Shown here one piece after another: positions 9,076-13,332 of a stretch of DNA of 64,000 nucleotides (position 1 is its first letter; the number at the start of each line of letters is the position of its first letter). Below the pieces are notes generated by a model that was given only the letters and a program-made list of their open reading frames with translations, was not told the origin of the DNA and did no database searches. The stretch covers positions 1 through 64,000 of the forward strand of contig MCFE01000134.1 in NCBI GenBank assembly GCA_002104905.1. Reading direction: 5' to 3'. Origin of the DNA: Basidiobolus meristosporus CBS 931.73. Taxonomy: Eukaryota; Fungi; Basidiobolomycota. The position numbers and the translations under genes are program-made.

Positions 9076-9867
9076 CTAGGGGGTGCCAAAAGTTGGTTCC
9101 AACTCTTGCAACAATATTTGAAAACGTTCTTTCTCCGGGAGAGAAGGGTCCAATTTGTTTAGCTTCGGCATCACCTTTCTTTCAAAAAAGTTCCTGATAT
9201 AAATTCTTGATCGCCATGGAATTAACGTATGGATATCCGACCAAGAATGGCCATATTTGATCAATCCTTCTAGCATCAGCTTCCTTTCTTCGTATGACCA
9301 GTCTCCTTTCTTCAGGGACGGGTTTAGATAGTTGTCGTAGCGTTCGGCAACCGTAGCTTGGTCTCGCCCTGGCATATCCTGGACAACGGCATGCCAATTC
9401 CTGCCATACTTTTTGACGTTCGCGATGATCAACTCATCTTCCTCTGAGGTCCAGGAGGTTCGGTTCAACGAGGGATCTAGTCTTCGCGTCCACCGTTGCT
9501 GGCACGCCTTGGGGGATCTCTTAATACTCTCGGAGATGAGCTTCCACTGGTAGGAGTATTTCGGGATCTCCATGAGTTCCCTCAAGCTGTTATCGTCTTC
9601 CGGGGTCCATTTGCCGTGACGAAACTCTTTTCTGGTAATGTTGAGCATATAGCATCTGGCCAGACTTTTGGCGGACCGGTCCGGAAAGTGCAGCAGGAAT
9701 TCGGACCATTTGGTTCCGTGCTGCTCGACTAACTTGAACAACTTGGCTTTTTCTTCCTCAGACCATTTTATCTGCTTCCGCTTCTGATCGACCGGCTTGA
9801 AGCAGAACGGATCCGACGATTTCGAGTGCACGCTTGCGTAATTAATCCATGGCAAATACTTGTACAA
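9076..9867 (-). CDS. Myb-like DNA-binding protein with four tandem Myb/SANT repeats
   Basis: Repeats begin KWSEEE, KWTPEDD, SWTSEED and DWSYEE, each with downstream Trp and RS/RD helix motifs. An additional 5' exon is possible. Confidence 0.9.
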   Translation of the reverse strand: MYKYLPWINYASVHSKSSDPFCFKPVDQKRKQIKWSEEEKAKLFKLVEQHGTKWSEFLLHFPDRSAKSLARCYMLNITRKEFRHGKWTPEDDNSLRELMEIPKYSYQWKLISESIKRSPKACQQRWTRRLDPSLNRTSWTSEEDELIIANVKKYGRNWHAVVQDMPGRDQATVAERYDNYLNPSLKKGDWSYEERKLMLEGLIKYGHSWSDIHTLIPWRSRIYIRNFFERKVMPKLNKLDPSLPEKERFQILLQELEPTFGTP

Positions 9868-10408: not shown

Positions 10409-11287
10409 TCAACGGCGCCGTTGCTGTGCCACCTCATGCGCCGAATTCCTGCCCAGTACATCATCTCTGGTGGTCTCGGCAGCAGCTAGGATTCTCTCGC
10501 GTAGCTCGGAGGAGATCCCTAAATCTTTGCCAGCTTTGGTCAAGTTTTTCAACATCGCATCAAAATGGGAGTCGTTCAAGTCCAGCAGGCGTTTGTGGGC
10601 AGCTCGCATTCTGGTCATATTCATCTGCTTCCCTCCTAAGAGGTGAATCAGGAATGTTGTTTGCATGCGCTGGAGTCGCTCTATGTTGACTCCCTGGAAA
10701 AATAGACGTGTTTTGCGATCGGTCAGGTTGTAGTGATAGAATCGCTCTACTAGCAGCTCTACCTTGTCCTCACCCAATATATCCAGGACGGTCGACTCAC
10801 TACTTTCCCTTGAGTTGGGTCGCTCGTAGGGATTAACCAGAGGCTGATCGAAAGGGCACTTGGGGGCCGCATTAGGAGCCATGTAGACAGCTTCCGTTGA
10901 CATGGGGATATCTCTGTGATCGAACGGGCATTTTGCAGGCGCTATAGGCACAATGGATGGTTCTAGGGGTTTCTGCTGAGCTGGGCCCTTTCTGAGTCCA
11001 GTATAAGGGCATCTTGGTTGGGATGGTGGCGTTGGATGGGTGTACTCAAGCGCGGCTTGTTTGTGGGAATCACCACAAGCATGGAGTCTATCGTGAGCCA
11101 CTGTGTGAGCTTCCTGCTTACCGTAAGCTAGCGGAGAATGAGTGACTCCAGGTAGAGATTCGGGCTTCTGGGAAATGTCATAGTCCACCCGAGACTTGGA
11201 TAGATCGTTGCAAGATGCATATTTTCTAACTAAACTCTGATGATGGCTAAATTTCTTCGGGGAGAACAGGTTGCTGAAAAATCCCAT
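10409..11287 (-). CDS. Group I truncated (2/2) hemoglobin, trHbN-like, with a ~165-aa N-terminal extension bearing three CP motifs
   Basis: C-terminal domain reads LDILGEDKVELLVERFY..LFF..RLQRMQTTFLIHLLGG..MRAAH..LNDSHFDAM..DDVLG. It has TyrB10 (Y184), the EF GG motif and proximal HisF8 (H231). Intronless ORF. Confidence 0.9.
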   Translation of the reverse strand: MGFFSNLFSPKKFSHHQSLVRKYASCNDLSKSRVDYDISQKPESLPGVTHSPLAYGKQEAHTVAHDRLHACGDSHKQAALEYTHPTPPSQPRCPYTGLRKGPAQQKPLEPSIVPIAPAKCPFDHRDIPMSTEAVYMAPNAAPKCPFDQPLVNPYERPNSRESSESTVLDILGEDKVELLVERFYHYNLTDRKTRLFFQGVNIERLQRMQTTFLIHLLGGKQMNMTRMRAAHKRLLDLNDSHFDAMLKNLTKAGKDLGISSELRERILAAAETTRDDVLGRNSAHEVAQQRRR

Positions 11288-11316
11288 GTTGGCTGCAGGG
11301 AAGGGTTGGGGCAGGG

Positions 11317-11345
11317 GTAGGAGTAGGAGTAGGAGTAGGAGTAGG
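11317..11345. repeat. (GTAGGA)n hexanucleotide microsatellite just upstream of the globin ATG
   Basis: gtaggagtaggagtaggagtaggagtagg read directly from the sequence. Confidence 0.9.
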
Positions 11346-13332
11346 GGCTAAAGTCTTCCTGAGAAACGTTGGAGTTGGAGAATGACTTGCTGATCCCTGG
11401 AGCTGGGTGAAAGAGAAGACAAATTGCTCTGTGATCTGCTTGGTAACTGATTGCTGTAGGCACGACGATTATCCCCTCTTTTAACTGAGCTGACGTCCGG
11501 TTGAATGGCTCGCATGCATGGACGGCAGGACAGATCTGGACTCAATCGAGCACAACCCATTAATAATAAGTTCAGTCGCTGTGTATTACCCGGATACAAA
11601 CCTAAAGTGGAGACCTCAACGGCGAGATCAATAATGGAAAATGAGCCATGGCCTTGAGGGCGACCTATTAGGAAGATGTTTAACAATTCAAATGACGGGG
11701 CAATCTGGGCCAGGATACAGCAGCGGTGGGGTGGGGAGGCAATTATTGCTGCATGTCTATATGCTCTAGACTCCGTCATCGCGTTCCCAAGTGCTGACTT
11801 GGGACCCGAAAACACCAGCGGCCCCGGTGCTAATCGTATATTAAAGCACGCCAGTTTTGTAACACGCCGTGCATAAGGTTGGATAGGAGCATGGCCCAAT
11901 ACCCACCCAGCAGTTGCTCCCGCACTCATTGGAGAGCTGACTAAGACATGCATAATATCCGAGACATGGGATGAAAGCTCATCGGGAGATTGGCTTCGCC
12001 TTGTTACATTACACAGAATGATTAGTGACCACGTTGAAAAGGATCTAGAGTATCTGCTGATAATGATGTTGGAAAATCCTCTATTGGATACGAGGAAACA
12101 GTGTCCCAAAAGGATTGCCTATTTGATACACAAGAACCCTTGGATCCTAGTAAGCGATGGGAGTCTAGATGGACAATTGCATCAAATGGTCCCGATTTGT
12201 TATCCGGGAGGTAATCAACTACTGGTTTGGCATCCATGCAACCTTCCGAGGTTGTTGGGCCAGCAAGCACAGAAGAGAATCACGATGCGCCGGAGCTTCA
12301 AGCGAACCGGAGCATGGTTGCCACGAAATCCAAGACGCTCCATTACCGTCTGTTGCACCAGCACGCGAGTTTCCGATGAGCCGCAGCTACGTTCTGGGAA
12401 CACCCTCAACCCGTATTGGCCAGGTTGGTGCATCCTTCCCGAAACCAGATGAACTATTAACTTGGATGTCGGACGAACCAACAGTGGTTCTGATTAAAAA
12501 TGCCAATCACCCTTCCATCCTACAGGCTTGGGTCGGAGCCTAGCCACTAATTGAATTTGACCACCCCAATGTGCGATACATGCATAGATGCGTTCATCTT
12601 ATGGATCTGCCTCATCGTATCCCTCGTTTTCTTGTTTAGACTACCAGATTGTCAATCGCAGAATATTGCATTATATTGATGTAGGTTGTCTTATAGGCAG
12701 TTAAAAATTTTTCTGCCACCATAAACGCTTAGTCCAGAGATATGCTGGCAAAGGCCCGTTGTATAGCACGGTGCTCTATGATATACATATATGCTGCTTG
12801 CGAACTGGATACGAGGGTGCCGATTAAGCGCATGGATTCTCAAGGCTTTCCTTACACTCGCCAAGCCGGTCTGAGAATCAACCTCCGAGGGTCTGAGCCA
12901 GAGGCCCATCGCAACATAAACCTCGCCTCTCACTAACTACAGAAGAATGCACCCTCAGGCTGGCTGAGTTCTTTAACTGCGTTTTGCAAAGTGTGGAAAT
13001 TCACCGATCTTGAATGGGATCAGTCTGCGGTGAAGCCTGTTCGGAGGCAATCATTTCCAAGGACTAGATTAAGTTGTCCATTCCCCATGCCGAAAATTCT
13101 GAAGTAGGATTATCTACAAATAGGATCTAACCTCGGCCTTGAGTTTTTATTTTTGTGGACAATCGTAGATATTAGTTGATAGGCTACAACAACGGCTTTT
13201 TCAGCCAATCTCTTACTAGATTGCTCGAAAATATAACATGTTGAGTGGATAATTCCCAATTCAACCAAAGGGAATTACTTGGTTTAAAAGCCTGGACAAA
13301 CTGGCCTCTAGTGCTACGGTGTCGACTTTACC

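Follow-up and report, generated by a model that had tools for sequence, protein, structure and literature searches.

Described haem-regulatory motifs and a Basidiobolus globin gene

Cys-Pro (CP) motifs, the best studied of the haem-regulatory motifs, ligate Fe(III)-haem with the thiolate of the Cys and mostly lie in flexible, surface-exposed stretches (PMC6356037, PMC10377097). The CP motifs of HO-2 bind extra Fe(III)-haem and serve as a redox switch (PMC8808069 and references therein), and they act in transferring and loading haem to the catalytic centre (PMC8808069, citing Fleischhacker 2020). Group I truncated haemoglobins (T1 globins) were called "unexpected" in fungi by the 2012 census of Hoogewijs et al., which had one chytrid (Batrachochytrium dendrobatidis) and one blastocladiomycete (PMC3287990). 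Here we describe a gene of Basidiobolus meristosporus CBS 931.73 in which a T1 globin domain follows an N-terminal arm with three CP motifs, RCPY (C93), KCPFDH (C120) and KCPFDQ (C144). It lies in a 64,000-nucleotide stretch of contig MCFE01000134.1 (assembly GCA_002104905.1), hereafter the window, at positions 10409-11287 of the minus strand, where a program-made list gives an ATG-initiated open reading frame (ORF) of 292 residues. The three motifs and the ORF are as a preliminary description of the window had them; the strand, which it did not give, is added here.

By analogy, HO-2 would be a closer functional counterpart of this protein than Hap1. In both HO-2 and the Basidiobolus protein a haem-binding core is flanked by a flexible region that carries CP motifs, but HO-2 has two of them, Cys-Pro(-Phe) in form and C-terminal to an unrelated core fold, whereas the Basidiobolus protein has three, N-terminal to a 2/2 globin. 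There is no sequence homology between the two, and the analogy would be functional only. With the haem-regulatory motifs (HRMs) of Hap1, Bach1 and ALAS the arm shares Cys-Pro, a basic residue at -1 and several copies spread along a disordered stretch, and its second motif (CP2) also matches the D-H tail of Hap1, which makes it the closest match in the arm to K/R-C-P-x-D-H (PMC9491583). Those HRMs have Val or Ile at +2, however, as in the Hap1 consensus K/R-C-P-V/I (PMC9491583), while the Basidiobolus motifs have Phe or Tyr there and a globin as their sole partner domain. The label "Hap1-like", applied to them earlier, suits them in part: it fits the Cys-Pro, the basic residue at -1 and, in CP2, the D-H tail, but not residue +2. 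The context of the arm motifs fits published features in its basic -1 residue, its aliphatic residues before the Cys and its CPF form. Aliphatic residues (A/I/V) N-terminal of the Cys favour haem binding, and haem recruited by a CP motif can move to a nearby His (PMC10377097); the CPF peptide IGVVCPFVR binds haem with a dissociation constant of ~0.9 uM (PMC5758875).

We suggest that the gene encodes a vertically inherited fungal T1 globin with a predicted disordered arm whose CP motifs act as HRMs, a reading to which we give about an even chance. By analogy with the systems above, the three Cys-Pro-aromatic motifs would most likely work in this way, with the Cys thiolate of each motif taking up an additional Fe(III)-haem reversibly, tethered beside the haem-binding core much as in HO-2. 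The arm would capture labile haem and pass it to the apo-globin pocket, and/or would couple the state of the protein (its stability, redox state or localisation) to haem availability. We favour an intramolecular role tied to the haem of the globin itself (its capture and hand-off, or a change of state that depends on haem or redox conditions), because motifs of this type lie on either side of the globin depending on the lineage and are always close to it; our confidence in this role is evenly balanced. Haem binding by the arm and its consequences are what we infer from sequence features; the gene, the fold, the key residues, the conservation of the motifs, the predicted disorder, the vertical descent and the recurrence of the motifs are described below as they were observed.

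The globin domain and its descent

The domain scores 38.7 bits against the Pfam family Bac_globin (PF01152), for which the curated cutoff is 21, over residues 171-277. A phmmer search of PDB sequences returned truncated haemoglobins only, the best being the group I protein of Tetrahymena pyriformis (3aq5, E=3.7e-13), followed by cyanobacterial GlbN, Chlamydomonas THB1/LI637 and Mycobacterium tuberculosis HbN (E=6.5e-7). All top matches belong to group I (E from 3.7e-13 to 1e-5), and the single group II entry is far weaker (E ~9e-3). An AlphaFold2 model built from eight homologues is confident over the globin domain (per-residue confidence score, pLDDT, 75-93). When this model was compared with known structures using Foldseek, ~117 residues aligned (TMt 0.71-0.78) to M. 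tuberculosis trHbN (1idr), Tetrahymena 3aq5 and the truncated haemoglobins of Chlamydomonas and Paramecium, with 1dly and 6cii among the matches. Model and structural matches agree on the 2-on-2 helical fold of T1/trHbN proteins, and with the group I sequence matches the earlier assignment to group I holds.

To place the haem-pocket residues, we fixed the Tetrahymena numbering by the mutant entries 3aq7 (Y25F), 3aq8 (Q46E) and 3aq9 (Q50E), which correspond to B10, E7 and E11. The alignment to 3aq5 shows that all four residues previously assigned by eye, TyrB10 (Y184), LeuE7 (L205), GlnE11 (Q209) and HisF8 (H231), were correct, so that the Tyr/Leu/Gln distal set of M. tuberculosis trHbN is present as had been proposed. 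Together with HisF8, this set most likely supports O2/nitric oxide (NO) chemistry of the NO-dioxygenase type, judging by the residues themselves. The domain has the 2/2 fold, HisF8, TyrB10, GlnE11, PheE14 and the EF-corner Gly-Gly in common with Tetrahymena 3aq5, M. tuberculosis HbN (1idr) and Chlamydomonas THB1, and LeuE7 in common with M. tuberculosis HbN. Two differences concern the domain itself. Counting along the ungapped E helix (+4 from E11 for E15), E14 would be Phe212 and E15 Leu213; on this helix numbering the PheE15 that gates the long tunnel of M. tuberculosis HbN (PMC3493545) is not conserved, Leu taking its place. The second is at the AB corner, where the Gly-Gly of T1/trHbN systems is reduced to Gly-Glu (G172-E173, a single Gly), while G218-G219 at the EF corner is invariant. 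A further difference is the 165-residue disordered arm with its three CP motifs. Other eukaryotic T1-type globins also have extensions, which modulate reactivity or oligomerisation, and the flanks of volvocine relatives contain CP motifs; those extensions have not been described as having a CP or HRM role, however, and the Basidiobolus arm is not homologous to them.

We looked for relatives with an exhaustive profile search of 1.84 billion representatives, which returned 834 proteins with E<=1e-3. When these are ordered by their best single-domain score, the globins that come next after the Basidiobolus paralogues all belong to early-diverging fungi: Mycoemilia, Spiromyces, Ramicandelaber and Dispira (Kickxellomycotina), Homolaphlyctis and Batrachochytrium (chytrids), and Neoconidiobolus. 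A maximum-likelihood tree built from 148 domains places the window protein in a Basidiobolus-only clade of 9 (SH-aLRT 96), which lies within an all-Zoopagomycota clade of 17 (SH-aLRT 95) and an enclosing clade of 34 that takes in chytrids (SH-aLRT 98). Because these fungal clades are nested, the tree indicates that the globin was inherited vertically in early fungi and not recently acquired from bacteria. We rejected a bacterial origin by horizontal transfer on the same nested clades and on the nearest domains of the protein search, which ranked fungal sequences first, and the comparison of bacterial with eukaryotic origin called for in the preliminary description thus comes out in favour of a eukaryotic (fungal) T1 globin.

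Set beside the B. dendrobatidis T1 globin (PMC3287990), the Basidiobolus protein nests with chytrid and Zoopagomycota T1 globins. In Zoopagomycota such globins are common and have expanded, well past the two fungal examples of the 2012 census. We counted five or more family members in B. meristosporus and nine or more in B. ranarum; within the window we found no second globin copy. One B. ranarum protein (P0047, KAK9696828.1, 366 residues) joins an N-terminal T1 globin (PF01152, 1e-16) to a Protoglobin/sensor-type globin (PF11563, 1.4e-38).

The arm, its Cys-Pro motifs and their recurrence

The annotated product on MCFE01000134.1 (P0001) is identical to the C-terminal 164 residues of the ORF: the deposited GCA_002104905.1 model starts at M129 and leaves out the N-terminus, CP1 and CP2. 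We favour the full ORF because of its B. ranarum homologues, its open frame and substitution pattern, the conservation of its first 35 residues and the context of M1, all of which indicate that the 292-residue protein is the real product and that the deposited model looks N-terminally truncated. The two B. ranarum co-orthologues (P0002 and P0003, 291 and 283 residues) cover 99% of the query and are annotated as single-exon genes, and the globin aligns collinearly, in keeping with the gene having been called intronless. Across ~165 arm codons the frame is open in all three genes, with in-frame indels only and saturated synonymous sites. The ratio of non-synonymous to synonymous substitution (dN/dS, or omega) in the arm is 0.22-0.24, a value that could be obtained only from the B. 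ranarum pair, whose dS is itself near saturation, as dS is saturated and undefined when the window gene is compared with those of B. ranarum. M1 has a context graded good or strong (caacATGg, A at -3 and G at +4).

If the annotation were right and translation began at M129, the upstream 128 codons would be 5' untranslated or non-coding sequence and CP3 would be the sole CP motif in the protein. We consider this highly improbable. We estimate that 128 codons would stay open by chance with a probability of ~0.002; the ORF aligns collinearly with two B. ranarum genes whose annotated models are full-length; and the N-terminus, CP1 and CP2 are conserved as protein (omega ~0.23) though dS is saturated. 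The codon itself has C at -3 and T at +4 (ccccATGt), against A and G for M1, and several other ATGs precede it. The full-length reading thus amends the reference annotation of B. meristosporus, where the gene model looks truncated.

Pro accounts for 22 of the 165 arm residues (13.3%), in line with the arm having been described as Pro-rich, and Cys occurs at 26, 71, 93, 120 and 144, followed by Pro at the last three. AlphaFold2 gives residues 1-162 a pLDDT mostly below 50 and never above ~55, with a low-confidence helix at 14-31, which places the CP motifs in a flexible (predicted disordered) region, as expected of HRMs. Searches with the arm gave no Pfam family at E<=10, no match in NCBIfam, no Foldseek alignment outside the globin domain and no usable match in the ESM Atlas. 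We also rejected a globin-coupled sensor, as the protein has no Pfam family besides globin at E<=10 and no fold match outside it. The word "sensor" in the preliminary description is thus unsupported: neither search revealed an output or transmitter domain beyond the globin. Composition-preserving shuffles of the arm give P(>=3 CP)=0.017 and P(>=2 CPF)=1.7e-4. Among 21 control ORFs of the window, Pro follows 7.3% of Cys and CPF does not occur.

The preliminary description had named absence of the motifs from orthologues as grounds for giving up its reading; instead, they are conserved. We aligned eight Basidiobolus T1 globins, five of them with an arm and three with a long one. CP1 is found in all five arm-bearing proteins (RCPY, RCPF, RCPF, SCPV, TCPA), CP2 in the three longest (KCPFDH, RCPFDH, RCPFSQ) and CP3 in 6 of 8 paralogues ([KGV]CPF...). 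The residue at -1 is R, K and K at the three sites of the window protein, whereas B. ranarum has R at CP1 and CP2 and G at CP3. In the three long-arm orthologues just 28 of the 130 arm columns (22%) never vary, and these cluster on R92-C93-P94, on C120-P121-F122 and on C144-P145-F146-x-Q-P-L-x-N-P-Y-E, the last forming an island conserved from C144 to E155. The CP motifs thus stand out as islands of conservation in a disordered arm that evolves fast and is elsewhere ~30-40% identical. On the evidence of the profile search, which gave no match to the full arm outside Basidiobolus among the 1.84 billion representatives, the full arm is Basidiobolus-specific. We rejected P0019, P0036, P0064 and P0143 as arm homologues, as the stretch of each that aligns to the arm region contains no CP.

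Although the arm as a whole has no match elsewhere, CP motifs recur beside related T1 globins. Among the best 150 of the 834 matches, Syncephalis has GGCPFYQ in its flank and Piptocephalis has RCPII, TCPFS and TCPYS; Entomophthora (ACPFQQP) and Neoconidiobolus (SCPFHFS) carry the motif C-terminal of the globin. CP followed by a hydrophobic residue occurs in linkers or tails of Volvox africanus, Chlamydomonas incerta and Astrephomene too, and motifs upstream of helix A that resemble CP3 are found in P0029, P0037 and P0019. Unlabelled multi-globin proteins have KKCPFSNNPIKNP 25 residues upstream of one domain and SSCPVYKYF 23 residues upstream. The motif is thus N-terminal in Basidiobolus and some protists, and in the linker or C-terminal in Zoopagomycotina, Entomophthorales and volvocine algae. 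Since the carriers occupy separate clades of the tree (Basidiobolus; Syncephalis/Piptocephalis; Entomophthora/Neoconidiobolus; P0029/P0037/P0019; volvocine algae), the association of CP with T1 globins seems, from these sequences, to have arisen more than once. The matches also include tandem arrays of 5-12 T1 domains in one polypeptide, for example in Lacrimia lanifica (P0009, 1882 residues), Perkinsus olseni (P0012/P0159, up to 2375 residues), P0010, P0015 and others. Diplonemids, perkinsids and volvocine algae have such giant arrays, as do unlabelled metagenomic eukaryotes, and most of the arrays are without CP motifs.

We measured this recurrence after removing the Basidiobolus sequences and three proteins (P0141, P0148, P0153) whose CPs belong to zinc-ribbon or YHS-like modules. 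Outside the globin domains of the remaining relatives, Pro follows 23 of 159 Cys where 4.8% Pro is expected (p=3e-6), and Phe completes 8 of the 23 CPx where 3.0% is expected (p=2e-7); these statistics treat 50%-identity cluster representatives as independent and ignore kinship, although such representatives are not fully independent. The reverse dipeptide PC is not enriched (5/157), and within the globin domains of all non-Basidiobolus matches Pro follows only 3 of 288 Cys. The three proteins set aside are T1 globins with N-terminal Cys modules, either a zinc ribbon (PF13248/PF13240) or a YHS-like domain (PF04945, sub-threshold).

Alternatively, the arm Cys may be redox-active, NO-reactive or metal-binding thiols and not haem ligands, acting as a thiol/disulfide switch, as S-nitrosylation acceptors in concert with the NO-handling globin, or as a Zn/Cu site. 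Four Cys of the arm are conserved (C26, C93, C120, C144) while the globin domain contains none, other T1 globins are fused to true metal-binding Cys modules of the zinc-ribbon and YHS-like kinds, and according to references given in PMC8808069 the CP motifs of HO-2 form a thiol/disulfide switch as well. We nevertheless think this explanation unlikely, since both the conservation and the enrichment concern the Cys-Pro(-Phe) context and not Cys alone. The CP Cys, spaced 27 and 24 residues apart along a disordered arm, do not look like a CxxC-type metal site, and the arm has no metal-binding Pfam match.

It could also be that the motifs are conserved for structural or incidental reasons, as linker turns for instance, with no ligand and no regulatory role. 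Close fungal relatives do function without them, and many CP motifs in proteins are non-functional (PMC5758875). This seems very unlikely to us given that the motifs stay invariant while the disordered arm around them evolves fast, and that CP and CPF are independently enriched beside T1 globins in separate lineages.

Several points weigh against the haem-regulatory reading that we prefer. A CP motif is insufficient for haem binding or regulation, and many of those known do not function (PMC5758875). Positive charge favours haem binding by CP motifs (PMC6356037), whereas the 9-mers around the arm motifs have a net charge of merely 0 to +1, and their +2 residues are Y, F and F and not the Val/Ile of the Hap1 consensus. 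The Kickxellomycotina and chytrid relatives have no CP motifs, and the motifs are therefore not essential for the globin. To these we add the kinship ignored by the enrichment statistics, the deposited gene model, which is without CP1 and CP2, and the outcome of a search for sequencing runs, which listed no RNA run; the case for translation of the arm comes from sequence comparison.

What the gene combines is a T1 globin with HRM-type motifs; as a testable generalisation, CP motifs would recur as accessories of 2/2 globins in eukaryotes. The preliminary description had not recognised the architecture as characterised, and in open-access full text we likewise found no report joining heme regulatory motif or Cys-Pro with truncated hemoglobin, an absence there that is not proof of novelty, and nothing relevant on Basidiobolus with globin. 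More tentatively, CP-aromatic motifs beside T1 globins may be a recurrent, independently acquired eukaryotic module by which labile-haem or redox status governs how 2/2 globins are loaded or how active they are; we regard this as possible but doubtful. If true, these would be the first HRM-regulated globins, and the module a general solution to haem acquisition by small globins in the eukaryotic cytosol. It is tempting to see here an extension to the globin superfamily of what HO-2 does, where a catalytic haem site is fed or gated by regulatory ones. The recurrence of the motifs hints at a mode of T1 globin loading or regulation not described so far, and the protein bears on haem delivery to and exchange with globins and on the role of the extensions of eukaryotic truncated haemoglobins.

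The N-terminal segment, feature coordinates and surroundings

The first 35 residues of the arm (Table 1) are 66-69% identical between species, versus 31-44% for the rest of the arm. Nine columns are invariant in the five arm-bearing paralogues (M1, F3, F8, K11, K12, R21, Y23, S25, L29), and the M-x-F-x4-F-x2-KK start is found in P0018 too. The RxYxS pattern of this segment may resemble a basophilic-kinase or 14-3-3 mode-2-like site, or the segment may be a targeting helix. N-myristoylation, suggested earlier from the Met-Gly start, is unlikely and was rejected: the protein begins MGFFSN, Phe at position 3 is excluded by the usual N-myristoyltransferase pattern (PROSITE PS00008), and Gly2 is not conserved, being Asp or Asn in paralogues (MD.../MN...).

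The segment would have a different meaning if the arm were a targeting or partner-binding region, with a basic N-terminus, the CP motifs as short linear motifs and an effect of haem on localisation instead of on haem hand-off; variants of this idea are an ALAS-like haem-gated mitochondrial import and a phospho- or 14-3-3-type docking site. The first 27 residues contain four K/R and no acidic residue, a helix is predicted at 14-31, and the RxYxSxxxL pattern is invariant. HRMs in the ALAS presequence block import, according to references given in PMC10377097, and in the arm of P0002 residues 69-102 match PF09029, the family of the ALAS presequence, with 15.4 bits. That match is below the cutoff of 21, however, is absent for the window protein, and is probably driven by the motif, PF09029 being itself HRM-bearing, rather than by homology. 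The N-terminal segment is also far better conserved than typical presequences, the paralogues P0004 and P0005 begin Met-Asp, and the C-terminal position of CP motifs in other lineages is at odds with a presequence role. We judge a targeting function quite unlikely.

Table 1. Positions in the window of the gene, its domains, motifs and key residues, and of an upstream tract.
Feature	Position	Strand	Evidence
Full 292-residue coding sequence plus stop codon: disordered N-terminal arm, then group I truncated globin	10409..11287	-	ORF list; co-orthologues P0002, P0003 cover 99%; start context caacATGg
N-terminal arm, residues 1-165, Pro-rich, predicted intrinsically disordered	10793..11287	-	AlphaFold2 pLDDT; no Pfam/Foldseek match; dN/dS
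Conserved N-terminal segment, residues 1-35: M-x-F-x4-F-x2-KK ... R21-x-Y23-x-S25-x3-L29	11183..11287	-	Identity 66-69%; invariant columns
CP1: R92-C93-P94-Y95	11003..11014	-	C93/P94 invariant in five arm-bearing proteins; R92-C93-P94 in three long-arm orthologues
CP2: K119-C120-P121-F122-D123-H124	10916..10933	-	C120-P121-F122 invariant in three long-arm orthologues; absent from shorter-armed paralogues
Internal ATG (M129), start of deposited 164-residue model P0001	10901..10903	-	Poor context ccccATGt
CP3: K143-C144-P145-F146-D147-Q148, ~22 residues upstream of globin (pre-A)	10844..10861	-	C144-P145-F146 invariant in five proteins
Group I (T1/N) 2/2 globin domain, residues 166-282	10442..10792	-	PF01152; PDB phmmer; AlphaFold2; Foldseek
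Tyr184 = B10	10736..10738	-	Aligned to Tetrahymena Y25; invariant in five arm-bearing proteins
Leu205 = E7	10673..10675	-	Aligned to Tetrahymena Q46; invariant in 8/8 proteins
Gln209 = E11	10661..10663	-	Aligned to Tetrahymena Q50; invariant in 8/8 proteins
His231 = F8, proximal haem ligand	10595..10597	-	Aligned to Tetrahymena H73; invariant in 8/8 proteins
CT-rich (CTACTC)n pyrimidine-rich tract/microsatellite, immediately upstream of M1 ATG	11296..11346	-	Read directly from sequence

The (CTACTC)n tract upstream of M1 is likely a core-promoter or 5' untranslated element (CT-box), judging by its composition and position. Downstream of the globin gene, 9076-9867 on the minus strand encodes four Myb/SANT repeats (PF00249, E=6e-38; deposited model 282 residues), and this neighbour has no counterpart at the B. 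ranarum globin loci. Beyond ~22 kb (22000-64000), the G+C content of the window falls from ~47-56% to ~37-45%.

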